Source of the DNA: Phallusia mammillata | Lineage: Eukaryota | Assembly: GCA_965637545.1 (NCBI GenBank) | Contig: OZ281498.1 | Location: forward strand, 19,778,001-19,842,000 | Reading direction: 5' to 3' | Length of the DNA stretch: 64,000 bases | Shown: piece after piece, positions 14,201 through 20,200 of the stretch | How the letters are laid out: every line of letters starts with the position of its first letter | Numbering within the stretch: position 1 is the stretch's first letter | The notes under the pieces: generated by a model | Told to the model about the DNA's origin: nothing | Database searches by the model: none | Seen by the model: the letters and a program-made list of their open reading frames with translations, nothing else | Program-made: the position numbers and the translations under genes

Positions 14201-17200
14201 TGTTACCCTATGAAAAAAATATCATACGTCTTTTGCGCAAATTTTTGCCAAAAGCAAGTCAAAACAGGTCTCTTTAGGACATAAACAACAATGGTGATCT
14301 GCATAAACCGCATAACACGTTGCAAAAAAATAAAAAAAAAAAACTTTGTAAAAGAGAAAAACAACACAACATTTTTACATGTATATCTTTGCTTACCTCT
14401 TTTTGTTCCTTTCTTGGGACAGTTTCTAACACATGGTGGCGCCACGCCTTGTATTGTTTCTCTTGAACTTTCACGGTTTCGTGGAATTGCTTCTTGATTT
14501 GACTTTCTTTCGACTAAAACAACGCAAGTCTCAATGCGCCGCCCACGTTTAAATGCAATCTCACTAAATGTCAAATGTGTTGCCCATATTTCATAAAATT
14601 TTGACTTAATGGTCACTGACAAAACAGAAATAAAACTGTTCTGCAGTAGGAATTTTTTCGGAAACACTTTTACATTTTTGGTTGCACACAAACTTCTGTT
14701 GCTGCTTCCCTAAACTTAGCCAATGGCAAATTGATACTAAGCTCAACCTTCATTTGAGGCCACAAACAAAAGCTACCAACCAGTGTTTCACAAAACAAAT
14801 TTACCGGAGTTCGTTTTGGGCAGCAGCAACATCTTTTTGTGTGTTGATTGCAAGTGAACGCTTGGGCGAAAAAATTAGACACTACTAAATTGCATGTATA
14901 CTACACAGGTGGTAAGAATTAAATTGACAGTCCAAAGCCACATAAAATACACAGGCAAGCCAATCACACCAAGTCACATAAATATGTTGCTGCCACTAGT
15001 TTGCCATATTGTACAACATTCCAGCACCGAATCCAACACAGAAACGACAAAAAACATGGTTAGTAGCTAATGTTGTGGCCACCTTTGTGTTAATTCTGCA
15101 CCATTTTTCAAGTTACTAAAAGTTAGCAGCTAATCTTAGAATTGTGTAGCTAAGTGCACTGTGTTTTGGTAAGTACAGGTGGTTTATTGAAGAACAGTTT
15201 TTAGAAATGAAGAAAATGCATGCTTGAAGAAAGGAAAGGCACATTTTATTGGAGTTTGGCTAATGTTTAAGACGGAAGGGTCACAATTTTACAAAATCTC
15301 AGTGCAAGGACACTTTAAAAATCGGTTTACAAGTATCTAACTGCATACATTAAAAAACGCGAATTAGTTAGTAGTTACTAAAATATAAAGACTCATTATA
15401 AAAAGTGGCATGCAAATCTCAAAGTTTACCAATAGAGTGCCTAGGCCTCAGATTTGGAAGTTCATTTTGTTACACATACTGTACATGTTTTAAAGCAAAT
15501 AGAGCATGCAGTTCTGCTTTTTTCAATGTTAGTTACAAACATGCAATTACTGCATTTGCCTATGTATCAGAACACGGGCAACCAAACTACAGTAATTAAG
15601 TGTTCAGGAAAGTAAAGGATGTTCAACAGTTTTTGCGATAATTGCCTTTTTACAGCAGATTGGCGAATTTACAAAATTTTACCCTAGCGCGCAATATAGC
15701 AAGCAAAGAAAAACAGCTGAATGGTAACTTAGTACAGGCAATTTACAACAAATTTGACAAGTCCTATACACAAAGGTAAACCCTGCCACACAGAGAAAAG
15801 AGCTAACGACATGCAAGGCATTATTACTACGCAGTTTCACTTTACATGCATAAAAGGCACTTGATAAGACTGTAAGGCTGAAAACACACAAAGTACACAT
15901 ATGGCATTGCTTTCTTGTGAGCACATTTGCTCTATTCTCAAACAAACACATAAATGATATGGTTTTCATTAAGTCTTTAATTAAGCCATAAAAAACAACA
16001 CAACATTGCTCACAGTTATTACATGCACAGACATTTTTACTTTCATTATTTTCAGCACATCGCAAACAGCAAACATGTCATTGCTTTTTCACATCTGACA
16101 CAGTCACATACCAAACCTACAGCCAAACACAATCCCTTAAGCAACAAAAAATACAACAGTATCCCAAAGCCAAAAAGGAACATAATATATCTACACATTT
16201 ACTGCACAAACCACACAGGTAAACTTGAGCCGTTCTTTAGGTAGCAAACATGGAAAAGCAATCCTGCTATAATGGTAGCCCCAGACGTTTTTGTACGAAT
16301 AGAATTACTTACTGGAAACTGTAACAATGAATCTGTTACAATGAATTTGTTAGAATATATGTTCTTGATTTCTGTTTATGTTGTTGTTGTTTCAGGGCAT
16401 ACAACTGTGTTTTTCCAACAATTGAATTACTTTTTTGAGCTAATGTTGTGCCAGCCTGCAGAGTATGGCAGCTGCATGCGCGATTTCGTTTTAAAAAAAA
16501 ATTGCACGCCAAATTTTCGGCGTTGCACGCGGAAATTTGCACAAAAGGCATTAATTGTCCTGTCTTAAACTCTATCCCTTGCTTTGCGCCTGCTGAAATT
16601 GGGCTTGCACGCGAATTTACGGGCCGTGCACGCGCGCACGCGAGACATATAGGTCCTGCACACGCGAGATCTCGTCGAGAACTGCCATGTTCTGCATACT
16701 GGATGTTGTGGTTGTTTCCATGCAATATTTTTGTCCATACTCACAAAAATAACGAGTTTAGATCGAACGTTAGATGATTCTATACCCCTAGTATTGGCAG
16801 TATGAAAGGTAAACAGTGGAATTTTAAGAAAGAAGAATTACAGTAAAAGTTTTGGCAGCTTGAAAACAATAACTACAATGTACTTTTGTATACTACTGTT
16901 ATGATTGAATTTAGGTCTTCATTTAAATCGAATTTGAATGTGGTTATGGCAGCTTTGTTTCATGTTCAATTAAATGTTTCGTGGAAAAAAGAAAGAAACA
17001 AAATCTCAAAAAAAGGTCAAAGTGCAACCAACCAAACCAACAGGCAAAACCTACAATAAATCTCAAACATTACACACCAGATCAGAAAGCATACCAAAAA
17101 AAAAACAGGTCTATAATCAAATACCGACTATAGACCTTAAACGAGCAAAAATTGGTGGCAAAAAGATAATCAATAAAGCAGCAATGATTGCATGACAAGG

Positions 17201-20200
17201 ATACATCCATATTGCAAGAATCAACAAAACAGATGCTGCAGCAACATAGTAGTTTCGGCTTTCTTCAGGAATAAATCGACGTACATGCGTTGTAAGTGAT
17301 GAAATTAGAGTTAGTCGTTCAGTGGTCAGGGCAAAAATGGATTGAAAGTCATCAAGAATTCTTTGAGTAACTTGGCTAATAGCTGCTGTAGACAGTGGTA
17401 TGGAGTTCTTGAACGATTTCGCTGCATCTTTCCAATGCATTTGGCACAAGAGAAGAAACAAAGATTTTGCCTCGTTACGAAGAAACGCTGGAGTTTGAAG
17501 CCATGAGGTTGATTTCCATTCAGTCTTAAATCTCTTAATACTTGCACTCAAGTTTTGGGTGTTGGCTATACAGTGGTACATAATCCGAAGAATGAATCCC
17601 AAAACCAGAAGAAGCAAAAAGGATGTTTGCCATGGTGATGTTGAAGACACCCTCACCACAGCAAAAGTAACACACATGATCATCATCAGAAAAACAAAAG
17701 GAACAATAAGAGAGTAGTATTCAACAGGTTCTGAGAAGCTAAGGCGTTTTTTCGGCGCTACAGGAGCAACTGGTCTGCTTGGTGGGGAAACCAACTTTTC
17801 TGTTGTGATGTCAGTTTTTGAGTCGCATTTGTGAGGAACGCTTCTCAGACGATGTGATACTGGTGAATTTTTCATAGCTTCTTTAAGTCGACAGACCTCG
17901 CAGCCCTGATAGTCGCCTTGTGGTTTCTGGGAGGACGCATAAGTTGCGGCAGATATGCGAGAGGCAGAAGATGTGACTCTTCCCAATGGAGCTGAGGATA
18001 AGTTAGAGCGGTTTGCTATTGGGGTGTTAGTGCAGCTTTGACTATGGTCCAGAACTTTTGACAAGCCAGACTGCAGATCTTTTAACTGGTCACGATTAAG
18101 TCCCAGTTCATGGGTTCTTGTAGCTTTTCGCATCAGGAATGGCTTGATAGTTGGAAGTTGCACAGACGGAGCAATGGATTTGCCGTATCGCCATGGTGGG
18201 CGTTTGTTGCCAGTTTTAGTTGGTGTGGGTCGAGAGTATACAATGCCATACTTGATTTCATTAGAAAAGGCTTTAGATCTTTCTTGGATGTTCTTACTGA
18301 TGCTCTTTTGACGTTTTTCTGGCTTTAGTAGTGATTTCCCATCTTGAGATTTTACATTCCATTCTGCAGCCTTTGTTAAAACCTTTTCACGCAAACCTTT
18401 TTTCTGGGTATCAGATTCTGACTTAGGAGGGCTGGGGAAAAATTTAGCAGGTTTTGTTCCAACTGGACTCCACGGAGCTTTTTTAGACTTGGTAGGCAGT
18501 TCTGCACTAGATACATACTTCTGTAGTCCATGGGAACGCCTTGATTTGGGTAAATCTGGCTTCTTTTTAGCAATTTCCGGCAGGCTTTTGCTTTTATGCT
18601 GCAGAGTAGGTTCATTACTGGCTATTGAAACTGTCTTGGACCTTGGCTTTTCAATGTCACCATCTGAAATTTTGCGAGTCGGTGGGGAAGCAGCTTTTAA
18701 ATAATCCTTAAAACTGCTCGCAGGGCATGTTCGTGATTTTTCAGGAGGCAAGATGTCTAATTCTGGCTCTTTTTCTTCAATTTCCTCTTGTTCATCTTCC
18801 TCATCTGAATCTTTTTCCTCAGCAAACTTAGATCTAAGAGAAATCACAATCTCCTCCTGCTTGCCGTGATGAAGGGTCCTTAATCCTTCCAAGAGATCAG
18901 CTCTCTCTAAATCATCTTGCTGGGTTTCAGCAGCCAGTTGGATAATGTCATCTTCAGTAACATCCACCATAGAAGAGGACTCTGGCAAAACGCACTTGCT
19001 CTCAAACTCTTCACTCACAGAAGAAACAACTTCGAACACAGCTTTCCTCTCAACATCAGTGGAATAAAAACCCAAACCTTTCATCACCACCATCAAATCA
19101 ATAACATTTTCGACCAAGTTTAACACACCCCACAAGTCATCCACATTCATACCAGTAATCACAGCTAAAACACATTCTACACACAAACACCCAGGCACAT
19201 ATTCTACTACTTGGATTTCAGCAGATTTTTTGGGTGTTTTTGTTGCTCCTGCCTTTTTAGAGACACGAGAACTCACTTTGAGACTTTTTGGTTGCTGACG
19301 CATTGCTGCGACGTGCTTCCGTTTTAGTTCACTCTCCCTACGCTGGGAGTATTCCATTTGGTTAGACAGCTCGGTTTGATGTTGGGATCTGTATAAGAAA
19401 ATATGTAACAAAATGTTGATATTCACAAGGTTTCTGCATAATTTGATTTTTTGGCCAAGTTTTAAATACCCAACACAAACACATAGGTTTCGTGAATAGA
19501 ATTCTTGGCAAGAATAGCAATAATTAAATATTGAAATGGTGTAAACAAAGATATCGATTTGTACTTTTTTTCTAATGCTACTTTTGCAATTAAAATAGTT
19601 GCATAAACCAGTGCTTCCTAAACCACTAGGCTACCCTTAAAGCCTTTGTCGAATCACTCCTAAACTTTCTTAGGCTGTGGATATTTAAGACTTTTTTCAA
19701 ATATGCAATTTTGTAAAGGTTTTAAATTGGTGTAAGGGGTAGAATTTTTTTATCAGCCTAAAGGTTGAAATTGAAAGTATGATGAAAATACAGAAGTTTT
19801 TGGAAGAACTTTCAATGTTTTTAACTTACTTGAGATGCTCCATCCTTTGTTCCTGGATGGCATTGAGATGTTTGTATTCAAGAGCTTGAGTGGAATCATG
19901 TTGAGTCAACAACATCTCATGTTCCTTTTCCTTGTGCTTCTGTTTCATGTTTAGCTCCTAGAAAAAAAATACAGAAATTTACCAAAAACTTGAAAATTGA
20001 ATTTCACATTTTTGGAGCATGTGTGTTAACCGCTTGGGTTATCTGAGGTCTTACTTTAAGAAGATCAACTTGGGATAACTAACTAACAAGTGGGAAAATT
20101 TATGCAAGTTTAAAGTACTCTTTCATGGCCAAACACTTGGAACAAACCAGCACTAGATAATAAAAAGAAAGAAAATACAAACAAAAACAAGTTTTTCCCT

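Follow-up and report, generated by a model that had tools for sequence, protein, structure and literature searches.

The closest described counterpart of the gene structure reported here is TAOK2-alpha, the long isoform of one mammalian member of the TAO (thousand-and-one) family of Ste20-type kinases. TAOK2-alpha has six helices in residues 941–1066 that are sufficient for targeting to the endoplasmic reticulum (ER), an amphipathic helix in residues 1146–1162, and a microtubule-binding tail in residues 1187–1235 with an SxIP motif that binds EB1 (PMC8699727). The hydrophobic regions of TAOK2-alpha are absent from TAOK2-beta, TAOK1, and TAOK3 (PMC8699727). Human alpha-specific variants are located at beta-transcript positions c.2232+319 and c.2232+579 (PMC13479925), and because they map there, the alpha-specific coding sequence corresponds to an intron of beta. 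Membrane anchoring and ER–microtubule tethering have so far been described as peculiar to this one mammalian paralogue and isoform. Here, we analyze the single TAO gene of the ascidian Phallusia mammillata, which lies in a 64-kb stretch of contig OZ281498.1 (GenBank assembly GCA_965637545.1, positions 19,778,001–19,842,000 of the forward strand; hereafter the window, whose coordinates are used throughout). It is highly probable, in our judgment, that ascidian TAO genes encode two C-terminal isoforms, one soluble and one longer with a membrane module, and that the choice between them falls at the splice donor after the residues QPKSLK.

The Phallusia TAO gene and its read-through frame

The TAO gene is located on the minus strand of the window. 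In a tblastn search, the UniRef TAO protein of P. mammillata (P0013, 1270 aa) aligns with the window exon by exon, from 32860 to 11247 and with most exons at 94–100 per cent identity, which identifies the locus as the Phallusia TAO gene, a member of the TAO group of Ste20-family kinase genes. P0013 carries the Pfam domains PF00069/PF07714, and a word-indexed search with exon plus tail as the query returned annotated tunicate TAO kinases. P0013 matches the window at 97–100 per cent identity over 19390–19277 and then over 14513–14394, bearing out the splice from 19277 to 14513 that had been proposed in an earlier, sequence-only reading of the window. The annotated product is therefore the soluble spliced kinase with the conserved coiled-coil C-terminus. 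The last exon before this junction begins after an acceptor at 19389/19388 (ag/A, the slash marking the splice site), ends in ...RQQPKSLK, and is directly followed by the donor AAA/GTGAGT at 19277/19276.

Past the donor, the reading frame remains open. A minus-strand open reading frame (ORF) at 17117–19426 encodes 769 aa, including its part in the shared exon, and continues beyond AAA/GTGAGT for 719 codons to the stop at 17117, just as the sequence-only reading had it. The other tail features listed in that reading (an acidic block, a basic region, hydrophobic helices, an amphipathic stretch, and a terminal hydrophobic segment) were all recovered by scans of composition and hydropathy. Across the same 2.16 kb, the other two frames contain 40 and 57 stops and the tail frame contains none, whereas base composition (G+C of ~39 per cent) predicts ~0.065 stops per codon; the length of the ORF is therefore not due to chance. 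The tail ORF takes up 45 per cent of the 4.8-kb intron between the 19277 and 14513 exons. The predicted long isoform would be ~1485 aa in length, with 766 upstream residues and the 719-residue tail, and would be devoid of the canonical C-terminus.

We propose two outcomes for transcripts of the gene. In one, the strong GTGAGT donor is spliced to the 14513 exon, giving the annotated soluble 1270-aa kinase. In the other, the donor would go unused and the transcript would presumably end before the 14513 exon; as this is a phase-0 intron, translation would then continue as Val-Ser... through the tail, giving the ~1485-aa kinase. The tail starts with a variable linker, which is followed by an acidic helical region and by a motif-rich basic region that is predicted to be disordered, and it closes with a predicted C-terminal membrane module (Table 1). 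It would thereby tether the kinase to an internal membrane, in all likelihood that of the ER, as is the case for mammalian TAOK2-alpha.

Downstream of the tail stop, close to where a read-through transcript would be expected to end, the TAO intron contains a G+C-rich patch (16270–16780), with overlapping ORFs of 98–129 aa on both strands and runs of GCGCG. The patch differs from the surrounding AT-rich intron and may represent either what is left of a repeat or a regulatory sequence.

To evaluate the read-through frame in other species, we compared ten ascidian genomes: the Phallusia window, eight further loci (L001–L008), and Styela clava (L011). Based on their identity to the TAO proteins of Phallusia, Styela, Ciona, and Clavelina, the eight loci could be roughly placed, and the set covers both phlebobranch-type and stolidobranch ascidians. 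An in-frame read-through ORF of 719–850 codons follows the same exon in all ten genomes. The exon end reads ...QPK(S/N)L(K/R) in the window and in L001–L008 and is followed by a consensus donor and then by the open frame; the donor is GTGAGT in nine of the ten genomes and GTAGGT in the remaining one, and the tail is always in frame. TAO exons are found 5′ of the ORF at each of the eight loci L001–L008, and 3′ of it wherever the contig extends that far. A divergent tunicate contig (L009, with 32 per cent G+C), on which the end of the tail is followed by canonical exons, represents an eleventh case.

The first residues of the tail form a linker that differs in length among species. The linkers of 47–108 codons are barely alignable, yet they contain no in-frame stops in any of the nine genomes counted, as opposed to 2–15 stops in each of the other frames. 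Only translation in continuity with the exon predicts a frame that stays open despite such divergence. In the conserved regions of the tail, the proportion of nonsynonymous differences (pN) is 0.14–0.36, and that of synonymous differences (pS) is ~0.72–0.90, which is saturated. For the basic region specifically, pN is 0.14–0.29 versus a pS of ~0.76–0.90 in phlebobranch-type pairs, and pN is 0.36 in the stolidobranch pair. Because synonymous sites are saturated in most pairs, we report pN against pS, with dN/dS ratios (~0.08–0.11) for the two pairs that allow one. Judged by these substitution patterns, the tail is under purifying selection.

A gene model made independently of our analysis joins the kinase and the tail. 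A profile search gave at least four matches, and among those listed is the S. clava ‘uncharacterized protein LOC120341823 isoform X1’ (P0019, 1580 aa), which has kinase Pfam domains. Its residues 1–792 are identical to those of P0014 (‘TAO3-like isoform X3’), and its tail follows QPKSLK. On the Styela chromosome, a single uninterrupted coding block runs from the exon over an unspliced TTAAAA/GTGAGT to the end of the 788-codon tail, and the X3 exons are situated further downstream in this gene. Styela X1 shares the junction, the motifs, and the two hydrophobic blocks with the Phallusia sequence, and the two tails are 31 per cent identical; it differs in belonging to the order Stolidobranchia, in having a longer linker, and in having TYPG in place of the PPE...CPAS form. 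In public databases, the long isoform is known only as this unnamed automated Styela model.

Could the ORF instead be an independent gene situated in a TAO intron, with its own promoter and start, and never joined to the kinase? Prokaryote-style gene callers do give stand-alone proteins of 718–906 aa, and phlebobranch-type sequences have a Met near tail residue 43. However, the initial ‘M’ of most of the called proteins is the donor GTG or another possible start codon within the TAO exon. In stolidobranchs, the Met near residue 43 is replaced by Leu, and no Met is conserved in all species. The ORF is also contiguous and in frame with the exon in all ten genomes despite linker indels, with no linker stops, and the Styela gene model joins kinase and tail. 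Finally, no stand-alone homolog was found in any other animal in a phmmer search of 1.84 billion representative proteins. We therefore regard a separate nested gene as very improbable.

There is practically no chance that the ORF is a transposon remnant or a fortuitous reading frame. Mobile elements do occur in ascidian TAO introns, as exemplified by an ~150-bp dispersed repeat in the window and by hAT-type ORFs at one of the other loci (L005), but the window contains just one copy of the tail, and Pfam recognizes no transposon domain in it; the tail is syntenic in 10–11 genomes, evolves under purifying selection, and has no stops where the other frames have 40 and 57. Junction, selection, Pfam content, stop counts, and copy number effectively refute this explanation. 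Among the findings that, according to the sequence-only reading, would tell against a read-through isoform are a frame broken in relatives and a match to an unrelated nested gene or transposon with its own start. The frame is intact in all ten ascidian genomes, and neither such a match nor a conserved start was found. On this comparative evidence, the tail is a real, selected alternative C-terminus of the kinase and not a nested gene, a transposon, or noise.

The dispersed repeat mentioned above is ~100–150 bp long and is present at 21660–21810, 24365–24476, 28050–28196, 29048–29194, and 42545–42620, in introns of TAO and of a neighboring calpain-like gene. Its copies are 77–84 per cent identical, its translation appears as a recurring pseudo-peptide, and it is probably a SINE- or MITE-type element. 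At L005, positions 5133–8805, the TAO introns 5′ of the shared exon contain hAT-type transposase ORFs (Dimer_Tnp_hAT, DUF4371) and HTH_32-type ORFs.

Architecture of the tail and its predicted membrane module

We aligned 11 ascidian tails (alignment A3) and predicted the structure of the Phallusia tail using AlphaFold2 (AF2). The features of the gene and of the tail are listed in Table 1.

Table 1. Features of the Phallusia mammillata TAO gene and of its read-through tail, in window coordinates; residues are numbered from the start of the tail unless P0013 is named.
Feature	Coordinates	Strand	Basis
Upstream TAO exons: kinase domain and first coiled-coil region, common to both isoforms	19829..32860	-	tblastn of P0013 residues 1-729
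Final exon shared by the two isoforms, ending ...RQQPKSLK	19277..19388	-	P0013 residues 729-766, 97% identity (tblastn); acceptor and donor read directly
Donor GTGAGT of phase-0 intron; unspliced, Val-Ser (tail residues 1-2)	19271..19276	-	read in sequence
Read-through tail ORF, 719 codons plus TGA stop (17117-17119)	17117..19276 (tail codons without stop, 17120-19276)	-	ORF and translation; orthologous ORFs 31-50% identical in the other ascidian tails aligned
Variable linker, residues 1-42; poorly conserved, length differs by species	19151..19276	-	alignment and stop counts
Acidic region with helical parts, residues 43-180, net charge -27	18737..19150	-	charge count; invariant columns; AF2 helices 33-67 and 108-137 at pLDDT 54-65
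Motif D(I/L)LPPEK..TCPASSF, immediately following the acidic run	18707..18766	-	hhalign to mammalian TAOK2-alpha tail
Basic S/T/P-rich region, residues 181-516 (to ~520), net charge ~+39	17729..18736	-	invariant columns in A3; pN/pS; AF2 pLDDT <50
Invariant CxxC...HxC block (ending ...PH.C), residues 456-484	17825..17911	-	A3 alignment, 11 sequences
Hydrophobic block 1, residues 517-573: two helices and a short loop, predicted transmembrane hairpin	17558..17728	-	Kyte-Doolittle; AF2 helices 524-546 and 549-571
Helical, partly amphipathic stretch of ~100 residues between the blocks, residues 574-675	17252..17557	-	AF2 helices at pLDDT 72-86 (module alone); highest hydrophobic moment 0.58
Hydrophobic block 2, residues 676-719 (44): two helices around a central (Y/F)P, predicted second hairpin	17120..17251	-	hydropathy; AF2
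First exon of canonical coiled-coil C-terminus, joined to 19277	14394..14513	-	P0013 residues 767-806, 100% identity
Remaining canonical 3′ exons (13782-13877, ~13197-13388, 12577-12741, 11247-12269)	11247..13877	-	tblastn of P0013

The best-conserved part of the tail is the ~330-residue basic region, which is predicted to be disordered, and not the membrane region. Its invariant or near-invariant motifs include KKSRSLPD, KAPWxPSG, KGLRxxVLTxAAE, RPPWRYGKS, and LPTIKPFxxRKAxRxHELGLNRxQL, and the acidic region that precedes it has conserved helical blocks of its own, among them EE(I/V)V(I/L)SLRSKF. Within the CxxC...HxC block, C459, C462, H475, H482, and C484 are invariant in the 11 sequences, and the C, C, H, and C are found also in a divergent fragment (P0007). 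With its C-x2-C...H-x-C spacing, the block, which shortly precedes the membrane module, may form a small zinc knuckle; it returned no family match. The AF2 model of the whole tail has a mean pLDDT of 45 and is for that reason unusable for fold searches.

Both hydrophobic blocks occupy conserved positions in all 11 tails, even though the last ~215 residues are just 13–35 per cent identical. Block 1 is 29–57 residues long and is located ~150–170 residues from the end, block 2 is 24–50 residues long, the gap between them measures ~100–125 residues, and the protein stops 0–20 residues past block 2. W615, which is located between the blocks, is invariant in 12 of 12 sequences. Modeled alone, the membrane module reaches a pLDDT of 73.5 and a pTM of 0.55, and the model shows a pair of helices at either end with four helices, some of them amphipathic, in between. 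Where the two blocks border on soluble parts, they are flanked by basic residues; in the simplest topology, therefore, two hairpins would be embedded in the membrane, and everything else, from the kinase and the basic region to the helices between the blocks and the C-terminus, would be cytosolic. On this model, the tail most likely anchors the kinase to a membrane.

The module invites comparison with domains of the reticulon-homology type (Reticulon, RETREG/FAM134, ARL6IP1, PRT_C of MCTPs, and Pex24p). Like them, the ascidian tail has two hydrophobic segments capable of forming hairpins, separated by a hydrophilic stretch that is predicted to be cytosolic, with amphipathic helices adjoining. 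The loop of reticulon-homology domains is ~60–70 residues long, so the ascidian loop of ~100 residues is longer. Atlas feature searches gave weak leads, with scores of 0.45–0.70, to hairpin-type ER membrane families (PRT_C, Pex24p, and Reticulon/RETREG), which we treat as leads and not as evidence. None of the 11 ascidian tails has a Pfam match to Reticulon, RHD_RETREG1-3, PRT_C, or Pex24p at E <= 1, and the Pfam matches of the window ORF and of all 11 tails amount to sub-threshold noise (e.g. DUF1774 and ABC_membrane_3). Likewise, a fold search with the membrane module in AFDB Swiss-Prot, AFDB clusters, ESM Atlas, and PDB returned nothing below an E-value of 0.7, with TM-scores <0.4.

Several observations count against a switch between a soluble and a membrane-anchored kinase. 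Insertion into the membrane is predicted from hydropathy and an AF2 model of medium confidence, no fold or family match backs the identity of the module as ER hairpins, and the language-model leads to reticulon-like and PRT_C families, which score 0.6–0.7, fall under the level of evidence. With respect to transcripts and proteins, Styela X1 is an automated NCBI prediction, and the public Phallusia protein that we found is the spliced isoform only. In the 1.1 kb that follow the tail stop, the coding strand contains no AATAAA or ATTAAA that could mark the 3′ end of the putative read-through mRNA. Lastly, the Met at tail residue 43, which is common to phlebobranch-type sequences and is not found in stolidobranchs, may be an internal start in some species.

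Comparison with TAOK2-alpha and origin of the switch

The sequence-only reading took it as established that the human TAOK2 isoforms diverge at QPKSLK and that the long one has membrane helices and tethers the ER to microtubules, and both points hold in the published accounts (PMC8699727; PMC13479925) and in mammalian sequences. Alpha-type sequences of orangutan, bat, and possum (P0018, P0022, and P0024) read QPKSLK/VR(A/P)G..., and the ascidian exon at 14513 matches the beta-type exon that starts with SKELQIKKQF in orangutan TAOK2 isoform 3. In ascidians and mammals alike, the donor after ...QPKSLK is read through, the first residue of the tail is a Val that derives from the donor GT, and the canonical coiled-coil end (SKE.QIKKQF...) is replaced by a long tail. 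The tail is acidic first, then has a (D/E)(I/L).PPE...PAS-like motif, and has several hydrophobic helices last; for kinase and tail, the predicted location is the cytosol. Inspection of the junctions indicates that the position and the mechanism are the same in the two groups. No paper that pairs TAOK2 with Ciona or ascidians, or that describes a membrane isoform of an invertebrate Tao kinase, was found in the searchable library.

The predicted orangutan isoform (Pongo abelii TAOK2 isoform 3, P0018, 1211 aa) combines the two ends. In residues 658–906, it reads through the QPKSLK donor into ~250 residues of the alpha tail, including the first hydrophobic helices, and then, from within the membrane region, splices to the beta exon SKELQIKKQF. 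This alpha/beta hybrid end is possibly the ‘gamma’ isoform mentioned in PMC13479925.

The tails themselves differ in several respects. Ascidian tails are 719–850 aa long, whereas those of mammalian TAOK2-alpha have ~490–510 aa, and the ~330-residue conserved basic region and the CxxC...HxC block are without a mammalian counterpart. The ascidian membrane part is predicted to have 2 + 2 helices in blocks ~100 residues apart, located at the very C-terminus, in contrast to the six contiguous helices of TAOK2-alpha. In TAOK2-alpha, an amphipathic helix comes after these helices, and a microtubule-binding tail of 50 residues after that, whereas the ascidian amphipathic helices are situated between the blocks. 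A scan for SxIP-type motifs ([ST]x[IL]P) found none that is conserved across the 11 ascidian tails, and no basic tail follows block 2. Any cytoskeletal role of the ascidian tail would be a matter of conjecture.

Sequence searches reveal little similarity beyond tunicates. A phmmer search with the tail against the 1.84 billion representative proteins gave seven matches, all of them tunicate-like ORF calls, with no vertebrates, amphioxus, or echinoderms among them; the word-indexed search added five more. When the profile of the 11 ascidian tails was compared, using hhalign, with that of four alpha tails from mammals (alignment A4), one 26-column alignment was obtained (E-value = 0.035, probability = 1.4 per cent), which pairs LPPEK..TCPASSF of ascidians with IPPEPPP..R.(C/S/G)PASQ of mammals and is the sole stretch that aligns. 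The observed score was reached by 1 of 160 column-shuffled and 1 of 160 block-shuffled mammalian alignments. Both motifs are located ~170–220 residues past the junction and are co-linear, the ascidian one directly after the acidic run and the mammalian one ~15–25 residues after it. The Cys of ‘CPAS’ is not constant, being replaced by Ser in marsupials and by Gly in a bat, and stolidobranch ascidians have TYPG. A Foldseek search of the membrane module against the Swiss-Prot AlphaFold models did not return TAOK2. The motif match is therefore suggestive but weak, and homology of the ascidian tail to that of TAOK2-alpha is not demonstrated. For this reason, and because the microtubule-binding end is missing, we classify the ascidian tail as a variant of the alpha/beta switch and not as a member of the TAOK2-alpha tail family.

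Two histories could explain the shared position. We lean toward the one in which the ascidian and TAOK2-alpha tails descend from one read-through terminal exon of the tunicate–vertebrate ancestor. After the duplications in vertebrates, TAOK2 would have kept this exon and TAOK1 and TAOK3 would have lost it, and the surviving tails would have diverged past ordinary recognition. This history is compatible with the two-isoform interpretation of the ascidian gene. It accounts for the identity of exon boundary, intron phase, and mechanism (QPKSLK/V... in ascidians, orangutan, bat, and possum, with human variants in the beta intron; PMC13479925), for the same order of elements (acidic region, motif, and multiple hydrophobic helices near the C-terminus), and for the fact that the best profile–profile alignment falls on co-linear motifs, at a score reached once in 160 shuffles under each of two nulls. 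Both lineages evolve fast, as exemplified by the alpha tail: possum and orangutan are just 59 per cent identical over the alpha-specific segment. On the other hand, the phmmer matches are exclusively tunicate-like, the hhalign probability is very low, the ‘CPAS’ Cys is kept neither within mammals nor within ascidians, and the 330-residue region of ascidians that is rich in invariant positions has no mammalian counterpart. Moreover, the membrane layouts differ (PMC8699727), a conserved SxIP motif and a basic C-terminal tail are missing, Foldseek did not find TAOK2, and alpha tails were retrieved from mammals only in a word-indexed search with the orangutan alpha segment.

The same observations leave a substantial, if lesser, likelihood that ascidians and mammals (or vertebrates) separately turned the same phase-0 intron into a membrane-anchored terminal extension. 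Convergence conforms to the lack of significant sequence or fold similarity and of detected relatives outside tunicates, and to the differences in domain content and membrane layout, including the missing SxIP and microtubule-binding tail; a phase-0 intron after the first coiled-coil region is also a permissive site for an extension. Yet convergence requires that two ORFs of 500–850 codons arose independently at the same one of ~20 introns, both with multi-helix anchors, and that the weak co-linear motif match (P ~0.01–0.035) is due to chance. The sequence-only reading had proposed that the switch is either ancestral to chordate TAO kinases or convergent. Our analysis substantiates an alternative C-terminus that is real and under selection, and that begins at the point of the gene structure where TAOK2 alpha and beta diverge; an ancestral switch is not established, given that the tails lack significant similarity and their layouts differ. 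We tentatively favor the view that a soluble/membrane-anchored TAO switch was already present in the tunicate–vertebrate ancestor, before the duplications that gave rise to TAOK1, TAOK2, and TAOK3, with TAOK2-alpha as the retained form and with TAOK1 and TAOK3 having lost it.

Surroundings of the locus and implications

Outside of the TAO gene, the window contains, on the minus strand, exons of a calpain-like cysteine protease upstream of TAO (~42000–48200), AIFM2/FSP1-like flavoprotein exons (~320–2650), and ORF fragments of another gene at the right window edge (~59690–62082), including an SH3-like exon and a long S/P/K-rich exon. Minisatellite-like tandem repeats are present at ~6000–6700 and 3170–3520; their minus-strand translation consists of repeated GKRCWQVASVVGKWQ and ATEPVAI units.

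The kind of isoform described here is known from TAOK2-alpha; the ascidian version is new and has conserved modules of its own. TAOK2 lies within the 16p11.2 interval and has been linked to autism and a neurodevelopmental disorder. A conserved tail with a predicted membrane anchor, placed in the same intron of an invertebrate chordate with a single TAO gene, would mean either that the soluble/membrane switch is ancient and widespread among chordate TAO kinases or that the same intron was recruited twice to the same end. In the basic region, the invariant motifs suggest binding partners beyond those known from mammals, and if the switch is ancestral, the ascidian tail would retain ancestral partner-binding modules, such as the basic motif-rich region and the CxxC...HxC block, that were lost in mammals. 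Ascidian eggs and embryos are transparent and well known for their rearrangements of ER and microtubules. With a single TAO gene and two isoforms, they would be a simple setting in which to study the function of a membrane-bound TAO kinase.

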